Shown: piece by piece, positions 37,268 through 57,640 of the stretch
Numbering within the stretch: position 1 is the stretch's first letter
Layout of the letters: every line of letters starts with the position of its first letter
Sequence record: MW879341.1
Length of the DNA: 64,000 nt
Reading direction: 5' to 3' (one strand)
Made by a program: the position numbers and the translations under genes
Notes under the pieces: model-generated
Seen by the model: the letters and a program-made list of their open reading frames with translations, nothing else
What the model was told of the DNA's origin: nothing
Databases searched by the model: none

Positions 37268-37331
37268 CGGCATACAACACTCTCTACCCCGCAAAGGGTA
37301 GAGAGTGAGTTTTACTTTTGTACGTATGCTG
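37268..37331. terminator. bidirectional hairpin between convergent genes
   Basis: CGGCATAC..CACTCTCTACCC-CGCAAA-GGGTAGAGAGTG..GTATGCTG. Confidence 0.75.
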
Positions 37332-38406
37332 CGACTTGAGTCTCAAAGTCCAACAGTAACGACTTACGAACCGGTTGAGGTGCCGCATCAAAAAGACGGT
37401 CATTCTTGATACGCTGGATAAGTCTCCAGACGTGGTTACGTTCTTGTTGGTTCTGCACGTTGTCAAACTTAGCTGACGCAGAGAGTGCCAGTGAAGCGTA
37501 AGGAACGTAAGCAACCTCTAACACCCATTGGTTCTGGCGATGTACGACAGTATAAGGAAGTTGGACAAAAGCTAACATACTGCTTTTGGTTGCAGTAGGG
37601 ATTAGGTCCATTAACTCTTTGTACTCAAACCGGTTAAGCTTGATACTGTCGACAATCTGCCCTACCACGCGGTCTACGCTTGTGTAGTTGGTGGCAATAG
37701 CAATAGGTGTCTGTTTACCCTCACGGGCTACAGGCGTACCGTTCCAAGTATTCAGGATACGGTTAAACCAAGCCAGGGTTGTTTGACTAACCAGTAGGTT
37801 GGGTAAGACATACTGCGCAATGAACTGTTGGTTACGTTCACGGTTGCCGGTTTCAATATTCAGCTGAGACTTAACCCACCCGTAGTACTGGACCGCTAAT
37901 AAAGGAATGTCGATGGCGATAACCACATACCCATCTGGAACATTGGACTGTTTACCGTCTGGTAACGCCATGTCTAAATCTGTCAGGGTATGTCGAATCA
38001 CTTTTAGTGCTTCTATATTACGCCAGTCCTTTAACGCTTTCTCAGGGTCGATATCAAAGTCGACACTAACTAACCACTCTTGTCCGTCAAGGCCGTAGAA
38101 CCAACCACGTTCACCCTGTGTGGGTTTCTGGTTAGTGGGTGCAATGATACCTGCACCCAGACAAAGGTTTGGAACGAAGTCGGTGATAGCGTTAAAGTAT
38201 TTTCTTACATCGTCGTACAAAGGTATGGAGAAACTGCCGACCAAACGCGAGAGTATGTGCGCAGAGTCCACCGCTTCACCACTGGCAAACCAATGTCCTT
38301 TGAGTCTAGAGATGTTTTCATCCCAGCGACGACGGACAGCTTCGAAGGCTTGATAGTGATATCGTGGTGTGCCATTGGTACGGGGCGTTTCAAACAAGCT
38401 ATACAT
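37312..38406 (-). CDS. conserved phiKZ-like protein between DNAP and chimallin
   Basis: 364-aa minus-strand ORF, GGAGG SD, expected syntenic position. Confidence 0.75.
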   Translation of the reverse strand: MYSLFETPRTNGTPRYHYQAFEAVRRRWDENISRLKGHWFASGEAVDSAHILSRLVGSFSIPLYDDVRKYFNAITDFVPNLCLGAGIIAPTNQKPTQGERGWFYGLDGQEWLVSVDFDIDPEKALKDWRNIEALKVIRHTLTDLDMALPDGKQSNVPDGYVVIAIDIPLLAVQYYGWVKSQLNIETGNRERNQQFIAQYVLPNLLVSQTTLAWFNRILNTWNGTPVAREGKQTPIAIATNYTSVDRVVGQIVDSIKLNRFEYKELMDLIPTATKSSMLAFVQLPYTVVHRQNQWVLEVAYVPYASLALSASAKFDNVQNQQERNHVWRLIQRIKNDRLFDAAPQPVRKSLLLDFETQVAAYVQK

Positions 38407-38675: not shown

Positions 38676-40784
38676 ATGGCACTGAAACGTAACGAGTCAG
38701 ATAAGGCCGACGGGTCTTCTGGCATGGGGTCATTAGGGGACGCGCTTTTAGAAGCCGCCGCCAAGAAACCAGACAGCGCCGTAGCTGGCGAATTGTTAGC
38801 TGGAGGTGAACGTTCACTGGAGTCGGGTAATGCACAGGTAATTAACCCAGAGCCTGTAGCACAACCAATCCCAGCGGCTACACCAGTACAACCAGCGCCT
38901 ACCGCTCGTCCTGTACAACCAGCAGCACCAACCCATAACCACAATTCACAAACTTTCGAAAGCAAGGAACAAAAGATGGAACAAGTTAACGCATACTACG
39001 GTCTGGACGATTCTTACTCTGGCCTGAACCGTACTCTGGGTCTGACCTCTGGCGCTGTAGACGTCAACGAGTTCAAGAAGATCGCAGAGAGCATCCTGGA
39101 AAACGATCCGGCTGCATCTAAAAGCTCTTACGGCAAGCCTTCCTTTATTACTCTGGAAGCTGCTGCCCTGGGTCTGCCGTGCAACGCACTGGCGATCGTA
39201 ATGAACGCACGTAACGGCGCACAGAACGTGCCGCTGGTTTACACCCTGCTGATGGAACCATCAGAGCCGCTGGCACCACGCGAATACAATGTAGGCAACT
39301 ACACTGTTGAGCTGAAAGCTGTAACTGGCGATATCTACGGTGACGACTTCGCTCGTGCTGTGATGAACCACGTTAAGAAAGTGACCAACTCCGATGCCGA
39401 TCCAATCGACACCGGCGCTAACGTTGTACCGAACGGCCTGAGCCTGAAGGACGACGAAAACGCAACTCACGTTCGCAGCATCCTGTTCTTCGCATTCGGC
39501 GCACTGAACACCGTTTCCGACGTAATGTTCGGTACTCAGAAATTCCTGAGCCTGAAAGTGTCTGGCCAACAGCAGCTGCTGGCTAACATCAACTGGTCTG
39601 GCAAACAGCTGGAAACTGCTGCGGGTAACCCTATCCGTGCAGACATCGTGCTGACCACCACCAAGCGTGCTCGCTTCGACCGTAACCAGACTGCTGCACA
39701 CGCTGCCGCAACTCGTCCGGTAACTGCGCTGGCTGCGTACATGGACCTGTTCTACGCACCACCGCGTATCGAAGAGAACCCGAACCAGCAGCAGTACGGC
39801 TACAGCAGCTACGGTATCCCTGCGGATGCTAAAGTAATGTGGTACCCACGTATGGTTATCACTCGCTGCCTGCCACTGGGCAAAGTGATCAACGTTGGTG
39901 AACTGCTGCTGACTCTGGCGACTGCTACCGTTATCGGTACCAAGCACACCTGGATCAACGGCTTCCGTCCGGTGCGTGGTCAGGTTGGTATCCACGACAT
40001 CGGTGGTCTGGGTTGGGAACATGAGTTCGTGAAAGGCCAGCTGGCTCCTATCGATTCTCAGGACCCTAAATTCAGCCTGCCTGGTCTGCTGAGCCAGACT
40101 GTTGTAGACAACCTGTTCTACAGCATGGACATCGACGAAGTTGGTGACCTGACCTGGCTGGAAAGCTCACTGCTGGCAATTGCCCGTGGTGGTGAAGAAG
40201 CTGCTGCTGCGAACGATTACATCATCGCCGCTGCAAACGCACTGACCGATAACAAGTTCTCTGAGTGCTACGACGTGACTCAGCCGATTCTGGTTAACGA
40301 AGTCGTGCGCGTACACACTGGCTACTACATGGAAGGTGACCAGAAAGTTGACCTGCGTAACATCGACCACCTGGCAGTCCTGAACATGACCGGTAAGAAC
40401 GGTTTTGGTCTGGCACAGAAATGGTCTAACGCGCTGGTAGACTACCCGAACAACAACGCACTGTCTCAGCAGGAACGTCAGAACATCCTGGGTGAGCTGG
40501 CACCGAACGCTGTGATCAACGGCTACGCATCTCGCGTGACCTTCAACTCCGCGTTCCTGTTCGGTCTGGCGTCTGCGATCTCTAAAGCTGGCACCACTCT
40601 GGTTGTCAACGACGATGGCCGTCAGGCTACTCAGGAAGCTCGCGTGACTGCATCTTACGCGTCCTTCGGTCAGGGTAACGTGTACACCACCTCCCTGGTA
40701 TCTCAAGGTTACGGCAATGGTCAGAACCGTTCTCCGCGTGCTGTACAGACTCCTGTGTCTGGCAACATCTGGGGCAACATCTAA
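38676..40784 (+). CDS. chmA: chimallin (phage nuclear shell protein)
   Basis: 702 aa, strongest high-expression codon bias in the window, P/A/Q-rich N-tail, RADIVL..YMDLFY..PRMVIT core, position between DNAP and nvRNAP beta-prime as phiKZ gp54. Confidence 0.85.
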   Translation: MALKRNESDKADGSSGMGSLGDALLEAAAKKPDSAVAGELLAGGERSLESGNAQVINPEPVAQPIPAATPVQPAPTARPVQPAAPTHNHNSQTFESKEQKMEQVNAYYGLDDSYSGLNRTLGLTSGAVDVNEFKKIAESILENDPAASKSSYGKPSFITLEAAALGLPCNALAIVMNARNGAQNVPLVYTLLMEPSEPLAPREYNVGNYTVELKAVTGDIYGDDFARAVMNHVKKVTNSDADPIDTGANVVPNGLSLKDDENATHVRSILFFAFGALNTVSDVMFGTQKFLSLKVSGQQQLLANINWSGKQLETAAGNPIRADIVLTTTKRARFDRNQTAAHAAATRPVTALAAYMDLFYAPPRIEENPNQQQYGYSSYGIPADAKVMWYPRMVITRCLPLGKVINVGELLLTLATATVIGTKHTWINGFRPVRGQVGIHDIGGLGWEHEFVKGQLAPIDSQDPKFSLPGLLSQTVVDNLFYSMDIDEVGDLTWLESSLLAIARGGEEAAAANDYIIAAANALTDNKFSECYDVTQPILVNEVVRVHTGYYMEGDQKVDLRNIDHLAVLNMTGKNGFGLAQKWSNALVDYPNNNALSQQERQNILGELAPNAVINGYASRVTFNSAFLFGLASAISKAGTTLVVNDDGRQATQEARVTASYASFGQGNVYTTSLVSQGYGNGQNRSPRAVQTPVSGNIWGNI

Positions 40785-40868: not shown

Positions 40869-42188
40869 ATGCGAGTAACGGGCATAACGGCCATGATCGA
40901 TCTGAACGATCTACCTATCGAATACGGTATCTGCCAAGAGCTGACTGACTTCGATCGTGAGATTGCAGTATTGACATGTTCACCAACCATTGTAAATGAC
41001 ATAGACTCTTCAACTTTAGAGGGAAAGGAGAAGCTCAATAGTCTACTGATCACGAATTACAAAGGTGATGCTCTACCTATCTTACCAACATGTGACTGCG
41101 GTAAATACCAAGGTGAACAGTACGTTGGTACGGTATGTGAAGAGTGTAACTTTATGGTTACTTCACCCACTGAGAAACCCATTGAATCGAATGTTTGGAT
41201 TGCAGCACCAGAAGGCGTACTGGGGTTAATTAACCCGGCGTTCTGGGCGATGTTCTCTAAACTACTGACAGTGAACAACACCAACATCTTAGAGTGGTGT
41301 GTAAACTCCAGTTATCGTGCTCCAGTGGAAAACCTGCAAGTCTTCGATATCCTGTCCAACTACATCATGCGCGATGGGCAACGATTCAAGCGTGGTCTGA
41401 ATAATTTCATCGATAACTTCGATGGGATCATTGAATTGTTAACTGATGGTAAGACCCTCCGAAACATCGCACCTGCTATGCGCGTTAAGATGCGTGAGTT
41501 CTGTGTGATGAACCGTGGGCGTATTTTCTGTCAGTATCTACCAATCCCCAACAAGCTGGCAATCGTCATGGAGCATACCCCAACAGGTACATACTCCAAC
41601 GAAACTGCCGGTGGTACCGCACTGGATGCTGTGCGTAGTATCGCCAGTATTTATGCAACGGCATTACCCGTAACTGCTACTAAGAAAGAAAACCGCTGCG
41701 TATTAGCAACAAAGCAACTAGCGGGCTATTTCTCAGTACAGTTCACTACCTCGTTAGGTACGAAGAAAGGATGGAACCGTAAACACGGCGTAGGTACACG
41801 ACAGGACTTTAGTTTCCGTTGTGTTATCGCCAGTATCACCGAGCCACACTACTATGAAGAATGTCATCTTCCATGGGGTGTAGCAGTTGGTATCTTTACG
41901 GTACACTTGTCTAACTTCTTCCTGAAGCAGGGATTGGCACCGAATGAGATCGAACGTCGTCTACATTTTGCGGTAACGCATTATGACGAAGAGATCGACG
42001 GAATGTTCAAGAAGATCATTGCTGACTCAGATGGACTGGGTCCAGCTATCATCCTGAACCGTAACCCAACCCTGTCCAGTAAGTCGATTCAGTTGCTGCA
42101 AATCACCAAAGTCAAGACGGATGTCAAAGACGTTACTCTTGGTATCTCTGTATTGATTCTTAATAGTTTCAATGCCGACTTTGACGGT
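40869..42188 (+). CDS. nvRNAP beta-prime N-terminal subunit, exon 1 (phiKZ gp55-like)
   Basis: CDCG..CEEC Zn site, RQDFSFRCVI, NRNPTL, ends at NADFDG; 440 codons. Confidence 0.9.
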
Positions 42189-43564
42189 AGAGCGTTGCCG
42201 TCGTTAAACGCTTCTAATTGCTGGGAACTCTTGAAGGTAGCCTAACCACAACGCAATCCGTAAAGGATAATCGTGACGGTTTGAAAATAGGCTATTATGA
42301 GACAATCAGCAGCGAAGTCCTTCTTGTATTACCAGCTGGGTAGGATACTCGGTGAGAGGGATGTGCTCAACGGCCATCGAAAGCACGCAGACGCAATGTC
42401 TGTGGAAGCAAGTAGAGTAGGGGAAACCCGAAACGAAGTGACATGGATGTAAGATATGGTCTAAAGTACGGTGACGTGCGTTGGTGATGTCTGGAAGCAT
42501 CACCGAAGTCGAAAGACTAAGCTACCAACATGTTCTATGGAGACACTATGGAGTTAAGAACCATACCCGGTACAGCTGGGTATTCAGCTTCGCGAGACGG
42601 TCGGATATTCAACCCTGACGGTATTCAGCGAACTGAATACACTAACGGGGATGGGTACCTTACCGCATCCGTGAAGTTAACAGATGGTCGATGGCAAACC
42701 TTCGGCATACATCGGTTAGTAGCACTAGCATGGATAGAATGTCCGGGTAATCCAGACGACTATACCGTCAATCACATCGATACCGATATCACTAATAATG
42801 ACGTCGATAATCTGGAGTGGGTAACGGCTCAGGTTAATAACCTACATGCGAGTTTAATGCGGTTAGTTGTGGATAGACCAACAATCTACATGCTCGACGT
42901 CGACGGAAGTTATAGCTTCATCGATAACTTGCATATGGCAGCACAAGTGTTGTCAGTGGATGTTGGATTGGCTTGGGATATGGTACGTGATGGAATTGAA
43001 GTGAATGGGGCTAAGTTATTCCCAATCACTAATCACACCGTTCTACCCGACCAACTGAGAAAACCATCAATAGGTAGTGGTGTAGACGCCATACTGGTGG
43101 AAGTTCCGGTTAAAGTCAAATCTATCAGCACAGGGTGCGTTCTGAACTTTAAATCAATGGGAGCGGCAGCAACGCACTTTGGTGTATCTGCTAGCCACAT
43201 CTATCAGGCAATCTGCAAAGATAGGGTTCGTGTGTTCAAACGCGACTACGTCGTTGTTAAGTCTGAGGATGAATTCCCAGAAGTGGATGATGCGACAAAA
43301 GAGAAAAGTCTGGCAGCTGTGGGTAAGGCTACTTGGGGATGGAACAGTGTCAGTAAAGTACTGTATGTAACCGATAGCGCTAGCCAACTTATAAAGCTAA
43401 CTGGCCTCAGTAAGAAAGCGGTAACAACGCGACTCAAACGCGACGGTTATGGCGAATTGGGTGATTGGATATTTTCATATGAAGATCAGTCCAGTCGAAT
43501 CTTAGAAAGAATAAAGGGTTCCAGCCCTTCTTGATAATGAACAATGTTGGTAGTACATATTCAG
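42189..43564 (+). mobile_element. group I self-splicing intron (IA-like) with homing endonuclease
   Basis: 5' exon ends GACGGU pairing with IGS GCCGUC (42197-42202); P AATTGCTGGGAA (42216), Q AATCAGCAGC (42304), R/P7 GGCCA (about 42372), S AAGATATGGTC (42451); terminal G 43564; AGAGCGTT pairs with exon 2 GACGCTCT (P10). Confidence 0.9.
42548..43534 (+). CDS. intron-encoded HNH homing endonuclease (NUMOD4-HNH plus HTH-type repeats)
   Basis: GYSASRDGRI, HRLVALAW, VNHIDTDITNNDVDNLEWVT; GGAG SD before ATG 42548 (upstream ATG 42530 lies in a stem). Confidence 0.9.
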   Translation: MELRTIPGTAGYSASRDGRIFNPDGIQRTEYTNGDGYLTASVKLTDGRWQTFGIHRLVALAWIECPGNPDDYTVNHIDTDITNNDVDNLEWVTAQVNNLHASLMRLVVDRPTIYMLDVDGSYSFIDNLHMAAQVLSVDVGLAWDMVRDGIEVNGAKLFPITNHTVLPDQLRKPSIGSGVDAILVEVPVKVKSISTGCVLNFKSMGAAATHFGVSASHIYQAICKDRVRVFKRDYVVVKSEDEFPEVDDATKEKSLAAVGKATWGWNSVSKVLYVTDSASQLIKLTGLSKKAVTTRLKRDGYGELGDWIFSYEDQSSRILERIKGSSPS

Positions 43565-46857: not shown

Positions 46858-47259
46858 ATGGAAAGACCCTACCCTAGTCTCAGCACGAAAGGCTGGCTAG
46901 AAGATGTACCGGGTGTGTTGGATGCAGTTATGACTAACTTCTTCCTGACACATCCCTCACTTAGCGTTGAGTTCAAAAACGCTATCTATTCGTTACCCGA
47001 CCTTATCCAGAAGTACGGTAACAATGAGACTGATATCAAGCGTGAAGTCCGTGATGCTATGGAAACACTCTTCAGTCGTTGGTTTGATAAGGTGACAGCA
47101 GAATGTAGCGTCACGTACCCAGACCCCGACGATGATATCAGGATGAATGTGTCTGTGTATCTCACCATAGACCATAAAGGCGAAACGTATAACGTGGCCC
47201 GTGAGTTATCAATGTCCGGGTCTAAGCTAATGAAGGTCATGGAGATTAATAATGGCTAA
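46858..47259 (+). CDS. conserved phiKZ-like protein (possible baseplate gp25-like)
   Basis: PSLSTKGW, SL..LIQKYGN; GGAG SD before ATG 46858; fold assignment is inference. Confidence 0.6.
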   Translation: MERPYPSLSTKGWLEDVPGVLDAVMTNFFLTHPSLSVEFKNAIYSLPDLIQKYGNNETDIKREVRDAMETLFSRWFDKVTAECSVTYPDPDDDIRMNVSVYLTIDHKGETYNVARELSMSGSKLMKVMEINNG

Positions 47260-47845
47260 GAAACCAGCCGACATGGTGGTCGATAAACAAACGATGGATG
47301 CATTGAAGTTCATCGTGGAAGAGACCAAAAAGGATATTCCTCAGATTGGGTATGATCTGTTTGTTCGTGATTACCTCCCACTGTTGGCAGCCCCACCTGA
47401 AAGAAACTCAGCGGGTGATATCGTACCGCGCAATCTGTCATTGTGGATGGAAATCTGTAAGCACGCCTCTAACTCAGTTCAAGTATTGAACCGGGATGGT
47501 ACAGTGCGCTTCACAGTACCGCCATTGGTAGGTACGATTCCAACGTACTACCCGATGCCCCGCACTGGCTTAGCGGCAATTGCCACCGAAGCTCAGTTTA
47601 AGAACAGCCAACATCCTGTATTAGGTGAGCGGTTCCTAAACAACGCCTTGTCCACGTCATTAACGGACCAAGCTCTTGCTAACAAAGCACAGACACTGGA
47701 ATGGAATAACGTTCTGGTTGAACACGGCTATGAACCACTTCCTGGTTACGGCACCTCCATAGTAAAAGCGGGGGAGTCTGTAGCTGCACCAGCGCCGCAA
47801 GAACCTCAGCGCGTTATTACGGACGACGATTACGATGACCTGTAG
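47252..47845 (+). CDS. conserved phiKZ-like hypothetical protein
   Basis: F..DYLPLL, W..I.....V.V....G.V.F.VPPL; synteny. Confidence 0.7.
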   Translation: MAKKPADMVVDKQTMDALKFIVEETKKDIPQIGYDLFVRDYLPLLAAPPERNSAGDIVPRNLSLWMEICKHASNSVQVLNRDGTVRFTVPPLVGTIPTYYPMPRTGLAAIATEAQFKNSQHPVLGERFLNNALSTSLTDQALANKAQTLEWNNVLVEHGYEPLPGYGTSIVKAGESVAAPAPQEPQRVITDDDYDDL

Positions 47846-48998
47846 ATTCACAAACACCAAAAACCCAAACTACCTGAACATTGCAGAGTTTGCTGATGTT
47901 CACTTAGGTCACAATAGAACCACGGCTGAGCACGTCATTACGTCGATGCATCATGCCCTACCCGATAACCCAGAGACCGCTGCTTTAGACATGATCGTCT
48001 ACGCGGGTGACGTATTCGACAGACTGATTACGTTGCCCACGAAAGACGTAGTGACTGAGATCGAAATCTGGGGTATTGATTATCTCAAGCTGTGTAAGAA
48101 ACATGACATTGTGACTGTTATTGTAGAGGGCACTCCTCGACATGACCGTAAACAGTGTTACCTGTTCGAGCACCTGAATGATCTTTACAACATCGGTGCT
48201 GAGATACTCTATGTTCAGAGGCTATCGGTTGTTAAGCTGGATAAATTCAACCTGAGCATTCTGTTTGTACCAGACGAATGGCATCCTGATCATCAGGAGA
48301 CTTATCGTCAAGCAGTACAGGCTATCGCTCAGGCGGGTATAGACAAGCCGGACATTGCAGTCATGCACGGTGCGTTCGATTTCCAGTTCCCAGCTAACCT
48401 CGATATCCCAACCCACGACTCAGACCTGTACTTACAGTTAGTGCGTGAATGGATCTTCATTGGTCACGTACACGTACATTCTCGTAAGGAACGTATTCTG
48501 GTCTCTGGGTCACTGGACAGACTGACGTTTGGGGAAGAAGCACCTAAAGGGCACATGCGCGTTAAATGTCGCGGTAATGGTCCAGACGGTGACGAAGTGG
48601 TGTTTGTGGAAAACCCGTTGGCGTTGCGTTACGACACGATTGACGTTGAAGGGTTAACGATTGAACAGGCCGTAGAAGATATCCGTGCTAAAGAGATGCC
48701 AAAGGGTTCTAACTTACGTTTACTCTGTGCTAAGACAGATCCGTCGTTTTTCGCAGAGAAGCAACTCCAGGCATCTTTCCCTAACTTCCGTATCGTAGTT
48801 TCTGCTAAGAAGGTAAAAGCTGCTGTAAGTACGCAAGTCGACCCACTGACACCGCGTCGTCGTGTTACACCAGTGGATATCTCACCAAGCAACGTCAAAC
48901 GTTTGATGGCTGCCCGTTTAGCTGAACGCGATCTGTTACCCGACTCACACGCCACTGAGCGTGTGCTGACGCTAATGGACGGTGTAATCAATGGATAA
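47835..48998 (+). CDS. sbcD: SbcD/Mre11-family metallophosphoesterase nuclease
   Basis: DVHLGH, AGDVFD, GTPRHD, MHGAF, GHVH, SGSLDRLTFGEE. Confidence 0.9.
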   Translation: MTCRFTNTKNPNYLNIAEFADVHLGHNRTTAEHVITSMHHALPDNPETAALDMIVYAGDVFDRLITLPTKDVVTEIEIWGIDYLKLCKKHDIVTVIVEGTPRHDRKQCYLFEHLNDLYNIGAEILYVQRLSVVKLDKFNLSILFVPDEWHPDHQETYRQAVQAIAQAGIDKPDIAVMHGAFDFQFPANLDIPTHDSDLYLQLVREWIFIGHVHVHSRKERILVSGSLDRLTFGEEAPKGHMRVKCRGNGPDGDEVVFVENPLALRYDTIDVEGLTIEQAVEDIRAKEMPKGSNLRLLCAKTDPSFFAEKQLQASFPNFRIVVSAKKVKAAVSTQVDPLTPRRRVTPVDISPSNVKRLMAARLAERDLLPDSHATERVLTLMDGVING

Positions 48999-49806
48999 CA
49001 TCCAATATGCTTTGGAGCGTGAGACGGGCGAACTGCCCGTCTCTATCGGAACGGCGTTGGCCTTTGAACCTGTGTTTATCGCTAAGACATTGGCCCACTA
49101 CGACATCGTACTGATTAACATCCGAACGATTATCCGAAACTACTACGCGAGTGTTGCTTCTGCTCGCGTGGATAGTGTGAATCACTCTGCCGCTGCTTAC
49201 GTGATAGCGGAAGAACTACGCACACTGAGTGAACACTTCACCAATGTTACGCCAATCATCTATTATTCCGAGTACGAAGACTTGGGTAAGTATTTACCGG
49301 GTTGTCTCGTGAAGACCGACTTTACGGAGAAAGCACTGGTTGCTAGAGACCGGGAAGCGCACACGTTGAACTGTTTAGTTACAGAACAGCAAGTCGCTAT
49401 CCGTGGTTTCAAAGAATGCGCTTTAACCTTTAAAGAGAAAGGGCGAGCCTTGCTATTTTCCCACATCGCCGTGGACCTGTTACTACGTTATAACTTTACG
49501 AAATTTGAACTTCTCGAATCGTATACAGCTGCTATCAAACAACGCGAACAATGGAACTCTAAACTTACCAACGGTAAGGCTCTGACACGTATGCCGTTTA
49601 ATCGGTTCACATTGACACTCTACGGAGATAATGGATTGTTGTTGAGACCACAACTAATCCAACTTCGTCGTGCGTTGATGTTGTTGTCTGAGGAACAGGG
49701 ATGGACCACGGTTACCACGATGGATAAGATAAAGGCTGACATTCAGAAGATCCCTAACGTAGAATACCGCACGTTGCTGGCAGGGTTGGCTCGACCGTAT
49801 CTGTAA
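48991..49806 (+). CDS. conserved phiKZ-like protein (possible flap/PIN-like nuclease)
   Basis: RETG.LPVSIGT.LAFE, INIRTIIRN, SHIAVDLL, LLESYT; synteny after SbcD; function is inference. Confidence 0.55.
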   Translation: MDNIQYALERETGELPVSIGTALAFEPVFIAKTLAHYDIVLINIRTIIRNYYASVASARVDSVNHSAAAYVIAEELRTLSEHFTNVTPIIYYSEYEDLGKYLPGCLVKTDFTEKALVARDREAHTLNCLVTEQQVAIRGFKECALTFKEKGRALLFSHIAVDLLLRYNFTKFELLESYTAAIKQREQWNSKLTNGKALTRMPFNRFTLTLYGDNGLLLRPQLIQLRRALMLLSEEQGWTTVTTMDKIKADIQKIPNVEYRTLLAGLARPYL

Positions 49807-49865
49807 AAAATCACATGACGGGTCTATGATATAGACAAAGTATGGGCCCAAAACCGGAGTGGAAA

Positions 49866-51278
49866 ATGTCCGATAACAATCAACAAAACGGCGAGCGCGC
49901 GCCCGCTAAACGTACCATCCTCAGTGAGTTTAAAACTCGTCTGATTGGCCGACCTGTAGATGGTGCTAAGAAATCTCCAACCTTCGCTTTCAGTATTAAT
50001 GAAAAGAACGAAGTGAGCATCACCGTTTACTCGAACATCGAAGGTGATCGTGGTAATGGTCTGATTAAAGGTAAGGGTGATATTGGTGTCCTGTTCATGG
50101 TCACTACTCTCATTCGTGCCGCAATTGCAACCAACGGACCTTTCCGTCGTGTAATCAAACATGAAGATCATGTCTTCATGCGTGGTCAGCGCAGTGAACG
50201 TCCGATGTGGATTTTCGATCTGATTATCCAACGTGACTCAGGCGATTCAGATGTCCGTATGATTCTGAAGTCGTACAATCGTCCTGACCTGGAGTTCTAC
50301 TTCCGTCCTACTGACTATCATCGTCTGTACGATGGTGAAGGTCGTGAACTCAACAGTAAAGAGATTGCTGACTCGTACGCAATCGGTTATTGTGAGATGC
50401 TGGAAGACCTGGCCTCTGACCTGCTGAACGATTACCAAATCCGTCTGTACGCTGAGACTACTCAGAAGACTGTGGAAGGGCGTCAACCATCTATGGTCTG
50501 GGGTAGTATCGCCAACAACCCACGCGGCACTGTCTTCACTAACGTTGAAGCAGACCAGCACATTAACAAAGGGATGATTGCTGCTAAGATCGATCCACCG
50601 ACGTTCTACATGTTCTGTGAACTGATGGGTCAAGCAGTAACTGCACCTCCGGGTTGGCGTCGGGGTATCAAGAACTACGGTCACCAGAAATCTCAAGGTG
50701 GCGGTCGTGGTGAGAAAGTCCATGAGACCACTCTGTGCGTAGGTAAGAACGAGGAAGGTGTGATTTATATCGCAGTCCTCGACCAGGACAAATCGCGTCC
50801 TAACCTACAGTTCATTCTGGACTCACACCGTCGCTTCGCTGTACTGGATGAGAACGAACAACCGTTGGCTCGTTCTCGTGTGACTTCTCTGATGGCTGCT
50901 AGCTATAAGAAAGTCTTCGGTCGTGCTGTAGCGAAACACCTGAACGCACACTACACTCCGCCAGACCCGTCAACCTGGCAGAACAACAACCAGCAAGGCG
51001 GTAATCGTCAAGGTGGTTGGAACAACAATCGCCAGCAAGGTGGTGGCGGTGGTCAGCGTCAGGGTAATTGGAATAACAATAACCAGGGCGGTGGTCAGCA
51101 GCGTTCGCAGGGAAACTGGAACAACAACAACCGTCAACAGGGCGGCGGAAATACGCAGTACCAGGGTGGTTCTCAGCAGGGTTCAGGCGGCGGTAGTCAG
51201 TATAATGAACCTCAGCAGCCGTCTGTACCACCGCGTAACGATGCGCCTCCTGCATTCGACACCGATATTCCTTTCTGA
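49866..51278 (+). CDS. ChmC-like nucleic-acid-binding protein, tandem domains plus SSB-like tail
   Basis: syntenic position before gp68-like gene; two related domains of about 170 aa; G/Q/N-rich linker; ends PAFDTDIPF. Confidence 0.6.
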   Translation: MSDNNQQNGERAPAKRTILSEFKTRLIGRPVDGAKKSPTFAFSINEKNEVSITVYSNIEGDRGNGLIKGKGDIGVLFMVTTLIRAAIATNGPFRRVIKHEDHVFMRGQRSERPMWIFDLIIQRDSGDSDVRMILKSYNRPDLEFYFRPTDYHRLYDGEGRELNSKEIADSYAIGYCEMLEDLASDLLNDYQIRLYAETTQKTVEGRQPSMVWGSIANNPRGTVFTNVEADQHINKGMIAAKIDPPTFYMFCELMGQAVTAPPGWRRGIKNYGHQKSQGGGRGEKVHETTLCVGKNEEGVIYIAVLDQDKSRPNLQFILDSHRRFAVLDENEQPLARSRVTSLMAASYKKVFGRAVAKHLNAHYTPPDPSTWQNNNQQGGNRQGGWNNNRQQGGGGGQRQGNWNNNNQGGGQQRSQGNWNNNNRQQGGGNTQYQGGSQQGSGGGSQYNEPQQPSVPPRNDAPPAFDTDIPF

Positions 51279-51289
51279 TGTAACTAACC

Positions 51290-51307
51290 GTGTGGCTTCG
51301 GCCACAC
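51290..51307 (+). terminator. UUCG hairpin
   Basis: GTGTGGC-TTCG-GCCACAC, no T run. Confidence 0.55.
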
Positions 51308-51378: not shown

Positions 51379-51843
51379 ATGAGTGACGCAGTTGTATTAA
51401 AAGCAGTTAAGATGGGTGACGGCAGTTTAATCTTTAAGTTGCAAGACGACACTGCTGACGGAATGACTTTACATCAATCCGTTAAGACAGCCATCGGTCA
51501 CCTTATCGCGGGTACCGGCATGCAATTAGGCGGTATGACACTTACCACTAAGCTGTACGGTAAGACTGTAGATCCAACCCGCCCTGACGAACCGGTAGAA
51601 TACATTACACCGGTTGGTCGTACGTGTGATGCCAGCGCTACTTTCTATACGTTGGCGGGTAGTTTACGTGGTCGCGTTAAACACGGTGCTGAGATTCATT
51701 TCATGGTAGATGATCTTACACGCAGTGGTCCCCGTATCTTAGATATGGAAGACGTATTCGCGTTCATGAAGAGTCCAGACAATAACAATCTGGTTCTTCG
51801 GTCGTTCCTGCATCATCCCGAAGGCTTAAAGTCTCTGTCTTAA
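51379..51843 (+). CDS. hypothetical protein
   Basis: GAGGA SD before ATG 51379. Confidence 0.7.
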   Translation: MSDAVVLKAVKMGDGSLIFKLQDDTADGMTLHQSVKTAIGHLIAGTGMQLGGMTLTTKLYGKTVDPTRPDEPVEYITPVGRTCDASATFYTLAGSLRGRVKHGAEIHFMVDDLTRSGPRILDMEDVFAFMKSPDNNNLVLRSFLHHPEGLKSLS

Positions 51844-51848
51844 TTGTT

Positions 51849-51874
51849 AGGAGGACTTCGGTCCTCCTTTTATG
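51849..51874 (+). terminator. intrinsic terminator
   Basis: AGGAGGAC-TTCG-GTCCTCCT-TTTATG, identical to the 379 copy. Confidence 0.85.
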
Positions 51875-51888
51875 TTGGAGTAACTGTA

Positions 51889-52269
51889 ATGAATGAGTAC
51901 GATCCCACTACTGCGGTACTGTCCTTTAAGATACCGTACCATCCTTTGACAGGCACACTGCTACTGAATAAGGTTCAGCCATACACTGAGAAAATCATAC
52001 GTTCTTATCTGGGTAGACTTTCCAGTCGCGTTGTACAAGATGCCATGGTTGCTAACCACACTGGTTTCGCTAGGGCTGTACCTACGTCAGCCGGAACTGA
52101 ACTACACTACCCGTACGTATTCACGATGGTCTCTCGTGAGTCGGGTGAACCAATGACACTCAGCGATATCGTTAGATCAGTTCGTGAGTCTTGGACTGTG
52201 AACTCAGATAAGTGGCAATTGGTTGCAACACTGGCAGACGGGGTGCTACGTGCAGATACTACTGAGTGA
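51889..52269 (+). CDS. hypothetical protein
   Basis: GGAG SD before ATG 51889. Confidence 0.65.
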   Translation: MNEYDPTTAVLSFKIPYHPLTGTLLLNKVQPYTEKIIRSYLGRLSSRVVQDAMVANHTGFARAVPTSAGTELHYPYVFTMVSRESGEPMTLSDIVRSVRESWTVNSDKWQLVATLADGVLRADTTE

Positions 52270-52573
52270 AAGGGCTGATACGGGACAGGTACGTAACTCA
52301 GCGGCAATCATCGACATTGCCTGTAACTCTCTCGTGTACAAGATCCCAAACCAAAGTCACCGCTGGTTGTCCTTTGAACAGGTTCAGGCTTTGCATGAGA
52401 TCGATAAGAAGATAGACGATCGTTTAAAGAAGCGTCTTTGTATAGAGGTTCCCACAATCGGTGAACCAGATAACCGTAAGGATATCGCCAGATTCATTAC
52501 TGCTGTGTGTAAGCAAGAAGTAAATAAATACACAGTAGACGGATATTATAGAAGGCAACAGCAGGGAAAATGA
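52250..52573 (+). CDS. hypothetical protein (start uncertain)
   Basis: open frame filling the gap; GTG 52250 is a candidate start. Confidence 0.4.
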   Translation: MQILLSERADTGQVRNSAAIIDIACNSLVYKIPNQSHRWLSFEQVQALHEIDKKIDDRLKKRLCIEVPTIGEPDNRKDIARFITAVCKQEVNKYTVDGYYRRQQQGK

Positions 52574-52663
52574 GTTATCTGAAGTCATGGATAACCGCAC
52601 AAACGATACTCCATCCTCCTAACCGGGGATGGAGTATTCATTATTTTCATAGAGGGTTCACGA

Positions 52664-53008
52664 ATGTCTGAAGTCATCGGTGTATTGAAAGTTTCTACAG
52701 TCGAATGGGTTGGCAGTCCAGAAGGAACGGTGCCTGAATGTAGCCCACTGTCACGCGTATGGTCTCGTGAGAATACAGAGGAATCTCGTGCTCAGCTGTT
52801 CGATGCAATTGAGAAAGCTAAGATTGAGATTGATTACTCGTCTAGCAGTAACGATTGGGTGGATGTTATCCGCACTATTGATGACCGTGTTTCGTACATT
52901 CATGGTGGCGATTATCTGGTTATTACAGCTGATATGAGGGTCTCCATTCTCTCTGGCGTAAGAGCACTGACCGTGAGCGAAGACGGCGTAGTGAGCGTAG
53001 AGTTCTAA
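52664..53008 (+). CDS. hypothetical protein
   Basis: GAGG SD. Confidence 0.65.
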   Translation: MSEVIGVLKVSTVEWVGSPEGTVPECSPLSRVWSRENTEESRAQLFDAIEKAKIEIDYSSSSNDWVDVIRTIDDRVSYIHGGDYLVITADMRVSILSGVRALTVSEDGVVSVEF

Positions 53009-53067: not shown

Positions 53068-54639
53068 ATGAGAATTTATCCTCTCGATAATTCGAACAAA
53101 CTTTCAGGCATCGTGTTGGAGCATAATGGTGAGCGTATAGTCTCTGAGGGGAGCATTTACGACCGCACACCATTTCCTTCTACAGGTGAGCTGTTCATGG
53201 ACATTAACGCATTCTGGGCAACCTTGAGTGCGGAACGTCAGCAGGGTATCTGGAACACGTATAAGGAGATTGAAGAAGCCTTCCTTAATACGTACAACGA
53301 TTCTCGATTGCACGAGAACGTCACGGCATTAGTGGCTAAGCTCTATTCGCACTGGTCATATGAAGAACTGTGTAGTTGGGTGAGACTGTATGGTCGAACT
53401 GTCATTCCGGTAGAGGTTCAGGATGACATTGGTGGTTACTCGTCACAAGCGAGAACATACCTGCGTGCAGATTATCAGGGATTAATTTGTCTGGTAGTAG
53501 CACTGCGTCCAATGATTCCAATCTGGAACCAGTACGTTCGTGAGTCTAAGAAAACAGTAGGTACTCACTTCAAAGAGTATATGGCAATGGGTCTGTTGAA
53601 TCAGACTACTATGCTGGACACTCCAGAGTTTGACCAACTGCGTACTTACGTCAGACTGAACGTAGATACAAACAAGATTACGATGTCTGCTATTGTAGCG
53701 GGTATCGGTAGTGCGGATTTAGAAGACTGGGTATTCTCAGTGGTCTTAATTCGTAAGGTGTGCGTGGGTGTGATTATGCACGCAACGCCAGATGGTGAGT
53801 TACTGTCGAACTACAGCACGAGTGCAAACATCGTGTCTAACGTGTACCGACAGATTGAAACTGCGATTGCAAGTCTTGACCGTAAGTTCGATGGTCAGAT
53901 TCGTAAGAAGCCGGACGGTATGGAGTTCCGTGATGATGATAAAGAATCACAAGCGGAGAAGATCATTGTCAAGCAAAAGATCAATGATTATAAATTCATT
54001 CTGGCACACGAGTATGCTAAGTTCATTATGCGTGCGCGTGACCTGATTGATCCCTCCATTCCAAAAGGGTTGATTGACCAATGCATTCGTACTCTGAATG
54101 CAAACAAGTCATTCCAACCTACCCAGGCACAAACTACACTGGCACAATGGGTTATCCACCCAGCACTGTCAGCACGGTTTGTACCGGCGTTAGAGCAACC
54201 AGAGCGTATTAACGTAATGGGCTTTGCGCAAGCAGCTTATTGGCATTGGGGTTATTACGATCTCGCACTGCTGATGACTGCGGATGCATTAGAGTTAGAC
54301 CAGGACCAAGTCTTTGGTAATGAGTCACGCTCTCGTGTAACCAATGAGCAGTTCCGTATTCTGAAAGAGCAGTATCCGCATTACCATCGTCGTGCTGGGA
54401 ATAAAGGTGAACCCCAGCAGCGCAATGAGAACTTGGCAACCAATGCGATTGAGTTGATGTATGGAATGTTCGACGGGAAACCGTGGCAGTTCAATGCACC
54501 GCAAGATCTGGTAGCACAAACTACAATGCGTCCATACGGTAGTGGTGGTTGGATTATCCCATCCGACATCAAACTCCAACTGGCCGACTTCATTATCACC
54601 CTGAACAATAGAAAGAAAGGATTAAAAGATGCTAATTAA
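53068..54639 (+). CDS. nvRNAP promoter-specificity subunit (phiKZ gp68-like)
   Basis: 523 aa; DINAFW, Y..L..L.VALRPMIPIW; position immediately before gp69/gp70/beta block. Confidence 0.7.
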   Translation: MRIYPLDNSNKLSGIVLEHNGERIVSEGSIYDRTPFPSTGELFMDINAFWATLSAERQQGIWNTYKEIEEAFLNTYNDSRLHENVTALVAKLYSHWSYEELCSWVRLYGRTVIPVEVQDDIGGYSSQARTYLRADYQGLICLVVALRPMIPIWNQYVRESKKTVGTHFKEYMAMGLLNQTTMLDTPEFDQLRTYVRLNVDTNKITMSAIVAGIGSADLEDWVFSVVLIRKVCVGVIMHATPDGELLSNYSTSANIVSNVYRQIETAIASLDRKFDGQIRKKPDGMEFRDDDKESQAEKIIVKQKINDYKFILAHEYAKFIMRARDLIDPSIPKGLIDQCIRTLNANKSFQPTQAQTTLAQWVIHPALSARFVPALEQPERINVMGFAQAAYWHWGYYDLALLMTADALELDQDQVFGNESRSRVTNEQFRILKEQYPHYHRRAGNKGEPQQRNENLATNAIELMYGMFDGKPWQFNAPQDLVAQTTMRPYGSGGWIIPSDIKLQLADFIITLNNRKKGLKDAN

Positions 54640-56080
54640 ACGCGTTATACTCACCGAGACCGGCACCTACAACGACGTATACAACCGTCCGCATACGACG
54701 ACTGTTAAAGGTGACACACTCAGCCGCATGCAGCGACTCACTGACTCTGGTACTAACTACAGCACTGATGCGCTGTCTGGTGTAGCGGGTGAACTGATGC
54801 GTCCGTCGGCTCACGTTGAATCAGCAGTGTTGATTCCAAACGGTTATGGTGAGGCCCGCTTCCGCTTCATGATGGAAGTTGAATGGCCTATGGTAGGTGG
54901 TAATACTCAGGTAGATGTTATCTGTGGTTATACTAACTATTGTGGTGTATCGCAGAACAGCAACAACATGGACCCTAACATGCTGTTGAATCTGAATAGC
55001 GTCACGAGCATCACCTCATACACTCGCCTGGATAGCATGAATCGTCCGTATCGTGATATTCACGTACGTGAGTCGAATCAGATCCTGACCAGTTATTTCA
55101 ATCCACAGCAACAGTACAACCAGTTCTATCTGGCACCACAAGACGTGTTCGATGGTATCACGCTGAACAACACGCTGGGTGGTCTGCAAGATGGTCGTAA
55201 CATCCGTACAGTAGATACTCGCGGTGCATCTATGGAAGCGCCACGACTGTCACGCCGTAGTAACAACCACGGTGGCTCGTACATGTCACGTACACTGAGT
55301 GCGTATCACACGGCATTGCAGAAAGCGTCTGTCTCTGATGACAACTACGCTAACGTAATGCGCAGTGCGAAAGCGGCAGTAGTCGATACCAATGCGTACG
55401 ACAACCTCAGTCTGTCTAATCTGTTGCACCACACCGACATGCAGTACACCCAGACTATCCGTTGGGCTGAACTGCTGCAAATCTGTCCAGACCTGGAGCA
55501 GCGTACTACCGTAGCATTCAACCGTGGTGCTCTGGTTCGTTCTCGTGGTCCAGGCGATGCATTGCCAACTCGTGGTGAAACTGAGCAGTGGGATACAGCA
55601 ACCAATGAAACGGTTGTTGCAACCATGATCGTTAACACCATTCCGACTCTGATGTCTGAAGCCAAGCTGACGCAGATTGCATTCAGTGCAACTAACCAGA
55701 CCATGGGGACTAACAACGGTACACCGTATGCAGTCACTGTGAACGATGCACGTAGTGTGTCTCAGATGTTGGAGATCCAATCGCCATACATGCAGGATAA
55801 CATCCATGCTATGGTGATGCGCATCGCTACTGAGTTGATGCCTGCTATCACATTCAACAACCAGATGGCTGCAACCATCACCTGTCGTTGTGATATCATG
55901 GGTAATACCCATATCGAAGTTTCACTTAACGGCGGTCCGTTGATTCCATACGACAACCCACAGTGGAGCGATTCAGCAAGCGCACCAGTTGTTACCATCA
56001 ATCAGGATAACCGTAAGACGCTGGCTCGTGATATCAGCAGCATCATGGAAAACCTGAACACCGAAAACTGGGCACAATAA
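54629..56080 (+). CDS. picA: PicA/Imp1-like nuclear import factor (phiKZ gp69-like)
   Basis: 483 aa; ETGTYNDVY.RP..T, IPNG..E.RFRFMMEV, GYT.Y.G; synteny after gp68-like gene. Confidence 0.65.
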   Translation: MLIKRVILTETGTYNDVYNRPHTTTVKGDTLSRMQRLTDSGTNYSTDALSGVAGELMRPSAHVESAVLIPNGYGEARFRFMMEVEWPMVGGNTQVDVICGYTNYCGVSQNSNNMDPNMLLNLNSVTSITSYTRLDSMNRPYRDIHVRESNQILTSYFNPQQQYNQFYLAPQDVFDGITLNNTLGGLQDGRNIRTVDTRGASMEAPRLSRRSNNHGGSYMSRTLSAYHTALQKASVSDDNYANVMRSAKAAVVDTNAYDNLSLSNLLHHTDMQYTQTIRWAELLQICPDLEQRTTVAFNRGALVRSRGPGDALPTRGETEQWDTATNETVVATMIVNTIPTLMSEAKLTQIAFSATNQTMGTNNGTPYAVTVNDARSVSQMLEIQSPYMQDNIHAMVMRIATELMPAITFNNQMAATITCRCDIMGNTHIEVSLNGGPLIPYDNPQWSDSASAPVVTINQDNRKTLARDISSIMENLNTENWAQ

Positions 56081-56089
56081 GGAAAGAGA

Positions 56090-57640
56090 ATGAACATTAA
56101 TGATAAGTTGTATCGGCCGTTCATCGCGTCCGCAGGTATGGTCGTGGACGACGAAGGCGTAATCCGCTACAAGGTGGGTGACGTGGCTGTGAACATCGCT
56201 TTCGATGGTAAGCCGATGGTACTGCCAACTGCTGAGCGACTGCGTGGTGGTGCACTGACTGGCTCAGTAGCATTCCATCCCTTGTCTGAGAACATCATTC
56301 GTGGTGAATCTCCAGTACTGCGTAAGCTGCGTACCGTTCTGGTAACTCGCCTGTCTAACGTTGCGTCGATGTTGATGCTGCGTATGGTAGAGATCGCGGT
56401 GGACGTTGACTATCAGTCTAAACTGAAAGCATCGGAAGCTGACTTCCTGACCACCCTGCCAAAAGCAGACGTCAAGCTGTTCAACACGATGGTGAAAATC
56501 GTCAACGCAATTACCCCGGATAAAGATTATCGCTTCCTGCGTATCTTCTTTAAACGCGGTGGGATGTATCAGGGTGACAAATACGCTCGCGTAGCAATCA
56601 CCACCTTCCCAATCGTAGATGCGCTGTTCGATGACAGTTCTGAACTGTTCGGCTGCAAGTTGCGTAAAACGGATAAGACTCAGCTGCAAGACCTGCTGAC
56701 CTTCCTGGTTCCAGATTCTAAAGAACCAACCGAAGCATACAACTGCGGTTCTAACTCTAAGACTGCACCGTACTTCGATGCACTGGTGGGTACGTTCGTT
56801 AAAGTGGCAACTGCACTGAACAAACACACCAAAGCGCTGAAGAAGCATCTCGAAGATTACGACGAACTGTATATCGATACCAGTTGGGTAGAGCAGTTGA
56901 AGAACCTGGACTCACTGAGTCTGGAGATTCCAGCCCTGCCAGGTAACGAAGGTGACGTCGGTATCGAAGAGAAACATCAGGTTGAACTGGAAGCTGCGAA
57001 CACTGCTGCTACCGCCGCGCCATCTGCACCAGTTACTGAAGCACGCGCCGCCATGCCTACTCGTCTGGGTGCTGGCTTTGCGAACGCGTTGGAAACTGGC
57101 CATGTAGGTAGTGTGGCTGATGCCGTAGTACCACGCGGAGCACCACCGGCAGCAGTGGCACCACAACCACAACCTACCACTGCACCACGTATGGCTGGTA
57201 TGCCTAACGGTCACGTAGCACCAGCCACTCACGTACCGCACTATGCACAGACAGCACAGGCACAAGCTCCAGCCGCAGCTGCTACTGAGACTGGTGGTAA
57301 ACTGTCATGGGATTCCGTAGTCGCTGCTAACCCGCCGCGTCAACCGGTTCAACCACAACCTCAGTACGGTGCTCCACAGCAACAGCCGCAGTATGGTTAT
57401 CCGCAGCAAGCTCCACAGCAGCCGCAATACGGGTATCCGCAACAGCAGCCGCAGCAACCTCAGTATGGCTATGGCCAACCGCAACAGCCACAGTACGGGT
57501 ATGGTCAACCTCAGCAACCTCAACAGGGTTACGGGTACGGCCAGCCACAAGGTCAAGGCTATGGTCGCCCACAAGGCAACGGTTACGGTTCTCCACAACT
57601 GTACCCAGACCAAGGTCGTAAAATGCCCAACTACGGGTAA
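56090..57640 (+). CDS. phiKZ gp70-like protein with Q/P/Y/G repeat tail
   Basis: FHPLSENI.RGESPV, KRGG...G.KY.R, IPAL.GN.G; low-complexity C-terminus. Confidence 0.7.
   Translation: MNINDKLYRPFIASAGMVVDDEGVIRYKVGDVAVNIAFDGKPMVLPTAERLRGGALTGSVAFHPLSENIIRGESPVLRKLRTVLVTRLSNVASMLMLRMVEIAVDVDYQSKLKASEADFLTTLPKADVKLFNTMVKIVNAITPDKDYRFLRIFFKRGGMYQGDKYARVAITTFPIVDALFDDSSELFGCKLRKTDKTQLQDLLTFLVPDSKEPTEAYNCGSNSKTAPYFDALVGTFVKVATALNKHTKALKKHLEDYDELYIDTSWVEQLKNLDSLSLEIPALPGNEGDVGIEEKHQVELEAANTAATAAPSAPVTEARAAMPTRLGAGFANALETGHVGSVADAVVPRGAPPAAVAPQPQPTTAPRMAGMPNGHVAPATHVPHYAQTAQAQAPAAAATETGGKLSWDSVVAANPPRQPVQPQPQYGAPQQQPQYGYPQQAPQQPQYGYPQQQPQQPQYGYGQPQQPQYGYGQPQQPQQGYGYGQPQGQGYGRPQGNGYGSPQLYPDQGRKMPNYG
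57350..57600 (+). repeat. imperfect tandem repeats encoding (QQ)PQYGY(G)
   Basis: repeated PQYG/QQPQYGY units in the translation; DNA copies diverged at third positions. Confidence 0.75.

Follow-up and report, generated by a model that had tools for sequence, protein, structure and literature searches.

Why should a protein of the phage nucleus end in almost the same residues as the single-stranded DNA-binding protein (SSB) of the host? This question is raised by the gene chmC of Erwinia phage pEa_SNUABM_54 (MW879341.1, 272,635 bp, host Erwinia amylovora), which lies in a stretch of 64,000 nucleotides, hereafter the window, which is 100% identical to the record and starts at its position 186,001. 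The product of the gene is annotated as 'hypothetical protein' (Table 1). An earlier note on this DNA had proposed that the phage grafted the whole interaction module of host SSB, i.e., a flexible linker and a partner-binding tip, onto a nucleus-associated protein of its own. As set out below, the SSB-type tip can be traced through most of the protein family to which the product belongs, and we lean towards a function in docking partner proteins.

Identity of the gene product

On the evidence of homology and gene order, the product is the ChmC/Imp6 of this phage, orthologous to PhiPA3 gp61, phiKZ gp67 and Goslar gp176. Searches with tblastn against phages matched PhiPA3 gp061 and PHIKZ067 (E 1e-9 to 2e-15), and phiKZ gp67 searched against the window matched both halves of the product (E 2e-15 and 7e-11). 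The family phrog_3284, of unknown function, also matches in two stretches (E 2e-51); Pfam gave no family at E ≤ 1 and NCBIfam gave none. The order of the genes (gp66-like, chmC, gp68-like non-virion RNA polymerase (nvRNAP) subunit, Imp1/PicA and gp70-like) is that of phiKZ and is also found in 11 named phages. Because the window encodes chimallin, the phage itself is, by its gene content, a chimallivirus, and the description of the protein as nucleus-associated is borne out by its orthology with ChmC/Imp6.

ChmC is an early, abundant, essential and nucleus-associated protein (PMC11077065). The PhiPA3 protein is a tetramer of Whirly-like folds with values of 58 nM for single-stranded RNA (ssRNA) and 184 nM for single-stranded DNA (ssDNA), and ChmC condensates form via a disordered C-terminal region that is N/G-rich and then S/D/E-rich (PMC11077065). 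In PhiPA3 this region is required for condensates and for shell localisation, and in Goslar it is required for the rescue of phage titre, but not for growth of the nucleus (PMC11077065). ChmC was discovered through its proximity to nuclear UvsX, and its own pull-down contained ChmB and RNA polymerase subunits (PMC11077065). In addition, phiKZ gp67 binds the import factor Imp1 directly, and TopA, a host topoisomerase, is imported into the nucleus of this phage (bioRxiv 10.1101/2024.03.27.586873). A pull-down with GFP-Rhc (RNase H-clamp) in Goslar recovered ChmC together with DNA and RNA polymerase subunits (PMC13648698).

The longest open reading frame (ORF) at the locus (49842..51278, +) begins with an ATG 24 nt upstream of the annotated start and would give 478 aa. 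The true start of chmC is likely the ATG at 49866, as this is the GenBank start, it is where relatives begin, and it has a GGAG 9 nt upstream. Residue numbers of the product are counted here from the ATG at 49842.

The tail and its likeness to host SSB

Positions 50960-51278 encode residues 373-478 and the stop codon, i.e., a tail of 106 residues. Together, G (23), Q (21) and N (20) account for 64 of the 106, and across residues 379-462 (84 residues) they reach 75%, compared with 17% in the folded part. Tryptophans at 379, 393, 410 and 426 are followed by tyrosines at 440 and 454, at intervals of 14-17 residues, and the evenness of this spacing was matched by just 44-95 of 100,000 shuffles of the tail. 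Arg residues are scattered among the G/Q/N linker. The chain ends in ...PPRNDAPPAFDTDIPF-stop, with AFDTDIPF as its last residues. The tail first noticed in the sequence, rich in G, Q and N with repeats spaced by W and closing in FDTDIPF, is confirmed by these counts. AlphaFold2 assigns a predicted local distance difference test (pLDDT) value below 50 to residues 373-376 and 378-478, which predicts disorder. Tandem Repeats Finder detected no DNA tandem repeat in the tail region (0 arrays), and the last 55 residues matched nothing when compared with plasmids by tblastn.

The host ssb was found by scanning bacterial genomes for the ending of SSB chain 7f2n_A, which returned Erwinia amylovora. 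The SSB encoded there (L022:4451-4987, minus strand) is 178 aa long, matches PF00436 (E 6e-41), has a G/Q/P/N-rich linker and has the C-terminus ...NNEPPMDFDDDIPF, ending in MDFDDDIPF. The phage tip is identical to it at six of the seven terminal residues, whereas the best match to the same seven residues among the other ORF ends of the phage is 3/7 (n=1,421). Furthermore, the whole genome has 1,344 stop-to-stop ORFs with a length of 60 codons or more, and chmC alone among them closes with a hydrophobic-Pro-hydrophobic end after an acidic run. Chance as the source of the SSB-type ending is excluded, and the earlier note was right to call the tail SSB-like.

It had also spoken of the whole SSB module. 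This stands for the composition of the linker and for the tip, but not for aligned sequence. Both the whole protein and the family profile had a sole PDB match, the tail of SSB chain 7f2n_A (E 0.74 and 1.5, respectively), while the tail alone had no match among PDB sequences at E ≤ 10. BLASTP with composition adjustment gave a non-significant E of 6.8 for the chmC product against host SSB; uncorrected, a tblastn search of host SSB against the whole phage placed the ChmC tail at the top (E 6e-10). As judged from these comparisons, the likeness to SSB is one of composition and a short terminal motif, not of alignable homology.

The uncorrected hit would be expected if this phage had recently captured the 3' end of host ssb, i.e., if the graft were literal. 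However, chmC and host ssb share no DNA match longer than 13 nt and the codons of the tip differ. Because there is neither such a DNA match nor alignable protein homology, a recent graft from the host is excluded. The same architecture also occurs throughout a family whose members share 20-30% identity. A recent capture thus has next to no chance of being correct, and the graft cannot be ascribed to this phage, as the linker and acidic tip are family-wide in ChmC. From these data, convergence is indistinguishable from an ancient capture that took place at the base of the family.

Conservation of the tip across the ChmC family

A first survey of homologues was biased because the tail was part of the query, which favours similar tails, and it was discounted. 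The survey was repeated with residues 1-372, i.e., without the tail, against 1.84 billion representatives, and recovered 476 proteins at E ≤ 1e-3. C-termini were counted in the best 150 of these 476, each from a different 50%-identity cluster. This survey of the C-termini of orthologues, a step already suggested in the earlier note, finds the terminal motif conserved: 101 of the 150 representatives end in [ILVMF]-P-[FLMIWY], and 87 of the 101 have D/E before it.

Counted from the end, the last residue is F in 88 of the representatives, M in 24, L in 14 and W in 8, and it is preceded by P in 106. Position -3 is I in 56, L in 41 and F in 23. Aspartate is found at position -4 in 106, at -5 in 100 and at -6 in 71, and position -7 is F in 35. 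At all of the last seven positions the most frequent residue is the one found in host SSB. Identity to the host SSB end is at least 5/7 in 47 of the 150, compared with a maximum of 3 for the other 1,421 ORF ends of the phage.

The tip also stands out from the sequence around it. Among eight close relatives, the share of invariant columns is 75% for the tip, 50% for the fold, 16% for the linker and 12% for the stretch that directly precedes the tip; 35 of the 90 linker columns contain indels. Elsewhere in the tails, hydrophobic-Pro-hydrophobic tripeptides number 5 in 6,935 positions, a count taken from the first, tail-inclusive survey.

Of the named phages found without the tail, RP12, LucasX, DT01, FLC9 and Erwinia phage RAY have the canonical tip. 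One or two residues are inserted past the Pro in PhiPA3, phiKZ and Xoo-sp14, and an acidic run with an aromatic end is all that is present in Goslar, 201phi2-1, Eowyn/KpGz_1 and Noxifer. Gene 127 of the Bacillus phage vB_BspM_AgentSmith (L143:892-1554, a 200-kb phage) encodes a tip that is 5/7 identical to that of pEa_SNUABM_54 and has almost no G/N linker. The combination of linker and acidic tip spans ChmCs from phages of Pseudomonas, Ralstonia, Xanthomonas, Burkholderia, Erwinia and Bacillus. Collectively, the aligned C-termini indicate that the SSB-type terminal motif appears to be a family-wide feature of ChmC under selection.

Tandem Whirly-like modules

The chmC product is approximately twice the usual length of a ChmC (470 aa vs ~250). 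Its two modules (Table 1) share 24% identity (E 5e-8), and each half of the product aligns to the lone module of single-module ChmCs. The AlphaFold2 model of the full-length chain likewise has two modules with a repeated strand-strand-strand-helix pattern. A model of module 2, built with 56 single-module relatives, reached a pLDDT of 94.7, and its top 18 Foldseek matches in the PDB were all Whirly/PUR structures (PBF-2, WHY1-3, StWhy2, PURA and fly Pur-alpha), with MRP1/2 lower. The scores are weak, with a probability of at most 0.96, but the best E is 3.9e-3, at template modelling scores of 0.28-0.44. When the full-length 478-aa model was used, lectins and beta-propellers ranked first. The likeness to Whirly/PUR is one of fold alone, with no Pfam match (E ≤ 1) and no such chain in the PDB sequence searches.

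According to the module 2 model, ChmC has a Whirly-like single-strand-binding fold. Whirly, PUR and MRP1/MRP2 proteins, the closest structures to this module, bind ssDNA or RNA and are commonly tetrameric. The earlier note had described the protein as non-SSB, which is correct in that there is no OB fold. It is too strong otherwise, as the fold is Whirly-like and the tetrameric PhiPA3 orthologue binds ssRNA and ssDNA (PMC11077065).

The two modules might not be equivalent. On the RNA-binding surface of PhiPA3 ChmC, two basic positions are conserved best, and module 2 retains both. Of 45 aligned sequences, 35 have a basic residue where PhiPA3 has R44; module 1 has Ser there, in an alignment that is uncertain at ~25% identity. 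Given this Ser and its lower net charge, module 1 may be the weaker nucleic-acid binder.

The duplication is common to relatives at 39-68% identity, one of which has the same gene order, 3' of the chimallin gene. The tail of ~105 residues is confined to the nearest clade, and ordinary ChmCs have a median of ~51 low-complexity residues. The tandem-duplicated ChmC is a new form of a known family. As the module is duplicated in tandem, two chains would give the four modules of the ChmC tetramer. A similar arrangement is known from the dimeric SSBs of Deinococcus-Thermus, which have two OB folds per chain, such that two chains provide four domains and two tails; the tandem duplication of the binding domain is alike, but the fold differs from that of pEa_SNUABM_54 ChmC.

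A docking function for the tip, and other explanations

We lean towards the reading that ChmC is built like SSB, i.e., as an oligomeric single-strand binder with a condensing linker and a terminal docking peptide, and that its tip docks partners. These would probably be nuclear proteins of the phage, and clients of host SSB are possible as well. With its evenly spaced aromatics and Arg residues, the long G/Q/N linker would provide multivalent self-association and give rise to condensates, as shown for the PhiPA3 orthologue. The last ~8 residues, which are acidic and then Ile-Pro-Phe with a free carboxylate, would be a short linear motif for docking, comparable in kind to the tip of bacterial SSB, and would hold partner proteins on RNA or ssDNA coated with ChmC, at the phage nucleus or within it. 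In the absence of bound nucleic acid, the tip may fold back onto the basic surface of module 2; the charge of this module is ~+5 and that of the last 12 residues is -3.

That the tip docks partners, and which ones, is what we infer from this design. The likeliest partners would be phage-encoded, namely Imp1/PicA, the Rhc-DNA polymerase complex and the nvRNAP, and host SSB clients are possible. Since phiKZ Imp1 binds ChmC/Imp6 directly, the Imp1/PicA orthologue is a candidate tip partner. Rhc is an attractive candidate as well, since the SSB tip has bacterial RNase HI among its clients; this is a lead and not a result.

A wider version of this reading would make ChmC the SSB equivalent of nucleus-forming jumbo phages. 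With four modules, a condensing linker and a docking tip, it would coat nascent RNA and exposed ssDNA, and the tip would organise the split DNA polymerase/Rhc replisome, the RNA polymerase and the Imp1 import site, and may capture host SSB clients. We put this forward tentatively and regard it as doubtful in its full extent.

Several observations weigh against a docking tip. The Pro motif is absent from ~1/3 of the ChmC family, and the homologue in Vibrio phage vB_VmeM-Yong MS32 (L144:817-1500) ends in ...STGW and lacks both the G/N-rich linker and the acidic tip. The experimentally studied ChmCs (PhiPA3, phiKZ and Goslar) all have degenerate tips: in PhiPA3 and phiKZ one residue is inserted behind the Pro, and Goslar lacks the Pro motif. 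What has been published on partners was therefore obtained with ChmCs that do not have the canonical ending. No tip partner is reported in the ChmC literature, where the documented partners of ChmC are phage proteins, and FLAG-tagged phiKZ gp67 (tag position unclear) still bound Imp1 (bioRxiv 10.1101/2024.03.27.586873). PhiPA3 ChmC prefers RNA over ssDNA, and the authors of the ChmC study read the acidic end as a generic 'electronegative cluster' (PMC11077065). Additionally, the full-length AlphaFold2 model leaves the tip unplaced (pLDDT ~33) and not docked on its own modules. The empty PDB search with the tail alone and the non-significant BLASTP comparison with host SSB, described above, count on the same side.

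If the electronegative end were generic, the tail would work through its physical chemistry alone, for example in solubility, condensate tuning or shielding of the basic surface, with no specific partner and with an incidental Pro-aromatic pair. Apart from the published interpretation of the S/D/E-rich end, the opposite charges of module 2 and the last 12 residues agree with this, as does the fact that ~1/3 of the family is merely 'acidic plus a hydrophobic end'. However, Pro at -2 and hydrophobic residues at -1 and -3 are conserved in otherwise unalignable sequence, and the tip is far more invariant than the linker. Charge alone does not require such a pattern, which is also rare at the other tail positions, and we therefore consider an explanation by charge alone rather improbable.

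The tip might also be aimed at the host. By copying the tip of host SSB, an early and abundant ChmC could titrate clients of that protein from the host chromosome, or recruit them to the import complex or the shell; among these clients are exonuclease I, RecQ, RecJ, PriA, the Pol III chi subunit, RNase HI and topoisomerase III. The identity of 6/7 terminal residues is to the SSB of the actual host, the family's commonest residue agrees with SSB at all seven terminal positions, and both of the E. amylovora chimallivirus lineages examined end in Pro-Phe. GFP-ChmC of PhiPA3 is in part cytoplasmic (PMC11077065), and in phiKZ, where ChmC/Imp6 binds Imp1, host TopA enters the nucleus. In contrast, the tips are very different among the Pseudomonas phages PhiPA3, phiKZ, 201phi2-1, DT01 and Noxifer, and the E. 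coli phage Goslar and the Klebsiella phage Eowyn have no Pro motif. The final residue is variable in the family, as counted above, whereas the tip of bacterial SSB is nearly invariant. Divergence of tips among phages of one host genus is explained no less well by a phage partner that co-evolves with the tip than by mimicry of a host protein. Moreover, no host protein is found among the ChmC partners reported in the literature consulted, and most host proteins are kept out by the shell. We thus regard a host-directed tip as unlikely.

Comparison with other single-strand binders

Compared with the ChmC/Imp6 proteins of PhiPA3, phiKZ and Goslar, the pEa_SNUABM_54 protein shares homologous sequence, gene neighbourhood, the Whirly-like fold, a chimallin-encoding phage and a C-terminal region that is disordered, N/G-rich and closed by an acidic end. 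It differs in having two Whirly-like modules in a chain of 470 aa (vs ~250), in a linker that is about twice as long (106 aa vs a median of ~51) and Q-rich too, and in its canonical acidic-Ile-Pro-Phe tip, where those of the studied ChmCs are degenerate.

The plan shared with bacterial SSB (PF00436) is that of an oligomeric single-strand binder with a G/Q-rich disordered linker, alike by composition alone, and an acidic tip ending in Ile-Pro-Phe. The linker of bacterial SSB is tied to condensate formation. In contrast to SSB, ChmC has no OB fold, its linker is unalignable and N-rich rather than P-rich, and its orthologue prefers RNA. The T4 gp32 and T7 gp2.5 proteins also have an acidic C-terminus, which contacts the replication proteins of the phage itself and competes with nucleic acid, and in T7 gp2.5 the terminal aromatic residue matters. 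Both have an OB fold, and a long G/N/Q linker is absent from them. They were not among the PDB sequence matches of the chmC product or of the family profile, and no direct comparison was made.

A bacterial-type OB-fold SSB was not found elsewhere in the phage: hmmsearch --max with a profile of 100 gammaproteobacterial SSB OB domains gave a best E of 2.2 over 1,422 ORF segments, in a screen that did not include gp32-like or gp2.5-like proteins. Host SSB searched against the phage by tblastn matched just the ChmC tail and other low-complexity stretches, and four other acidic-ended ORFs of the phage gave no SSB-type or other informative family. A classic OB-fold SSB is typical of group 2 jumbo phages, while for the PhiKZ-like group a divergent polymerase, a divergent DnaB and RNase H1 are given and an SSB is not listed (Iyer et al., PMC7824862). 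SSB is likewise unmentioned in the chimallivirus core-genome paper, in reviews and in the Rhc replisome preprint (PMC13648698). ChmC is a candidate single-strand binder of PhiKZ-like phages, for which we found none described in the literature.

Significance for ChmC function

The role of ChmC is unsettled, with proposals that range over mRNA export, protein import, R-loop control and shell association. An SSB-type tip that is selected more strongly than the fold provides a concrete handle on this question, since at least one partner should then have a defined pocket for it. The loss of shell localisation in PhiPA3 and of titre rescue in Goslar on deletion of the C-terminal region may be explained by such a tip, through which ChmC is also connected with replication and the RNase H machinery.

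The tip appears to be an unremarked feature of ChmC. We found no literature that couples ChmC with SSB, and SSB is unmentioned in the ChmC paper (PMC11077065) and the PicA paper. The degenerate tips of all the model ChmCs may explain why the likeness to SSB went unremarked. The duplicated ChmC of the Erwinia clade is a natural variant, with one tail for two binding modules and a linker of double length, and it would be a useful comparison.

Gene neighbourhood and other observations

Table 1. Features of chmC and of related genes in the window of pEa_SNUABM_54
Feature	Position	Strand	Remarks
Rhc (RNase H-clamp, Goslar gp190) orthologue	37312..38406	-	tblastn E 6e-17
Chimallin (ChmA), nuclear-shell protein	38676..40784	+	phrog_4795 'nuclear shell protein', E 9.5e-85
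gp66-like gene	48991..49806	+	Directly upstream of chmC; tblastn E 2e-24; phrog_3229
chmC / imp6 orthologue	49866..51278	+	470 aa; QXO11112.1, annotated 'hypothetical protein'
Whirly-like module 1 (predicted)	49923..50423	+	Residues 28-194; net charge ~-1
Whirly-like module 2 (predicted)	50436..50951	+	Residues 199-370; net charge ~+5
Disordered G/Q/N-rich linker (predicted)	50958..51251	+	Residues 373-470; evenly spaced W/Y, Arg between
C-terminal tip AFDTDIPF	51252..51275	+	Residues 471-478; stop codon 51276-51278
gp68-like non-virion RNA polymerase subunit	53068..54639	+	Downstream of chmC; tblastn E 3e-52; phrog_3209
Imp1/PicA (phiKZ gp69) orthologue	54629..56080	+	tblastn E 1e-41; phrog_3141

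A scan for terminators called none 3' of chmC. A perfect 7-bp stem with a TTCG loop is found at 51290-51307, 12 nt past the chmC stop; it has no T-run and was not called by the scan. Four small ORFs (51379-53008, +) separate chmC from the gp68-like nvRNAP gene, whereas the two genes are adjacent in phiKZ, PhiPA3, Goslar and eight further phages. Two of the four small ORFs were checked and have no Pfam or PHROG family.

Two genes past the gp68-like gene, the gp70-like protein (56090-57640, +) carries Q/P/Y/G-rich repeats over its C-terminal ~100 residues (57359-57628). This is the second low-complexity tail of the gene block, and it is without an acidic tip. On the other side of chmC, two genes upstream, lies the gene of an SbcD-like nuclease (47835-48998, +; phrog_100, E 3e-48). 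It is preceded by a gene for a protein of 197 aa (47252-47845, +; phrog_34423, function unknown) whose C-terminus is an acidic run plus Leu. Closer to the chimallin gene, an HNH endonuclease gene (42530-43534, +; phrog_59, E 4e-32) is located directly 3' of the nvRNAP beta-like gene (40869-42245).

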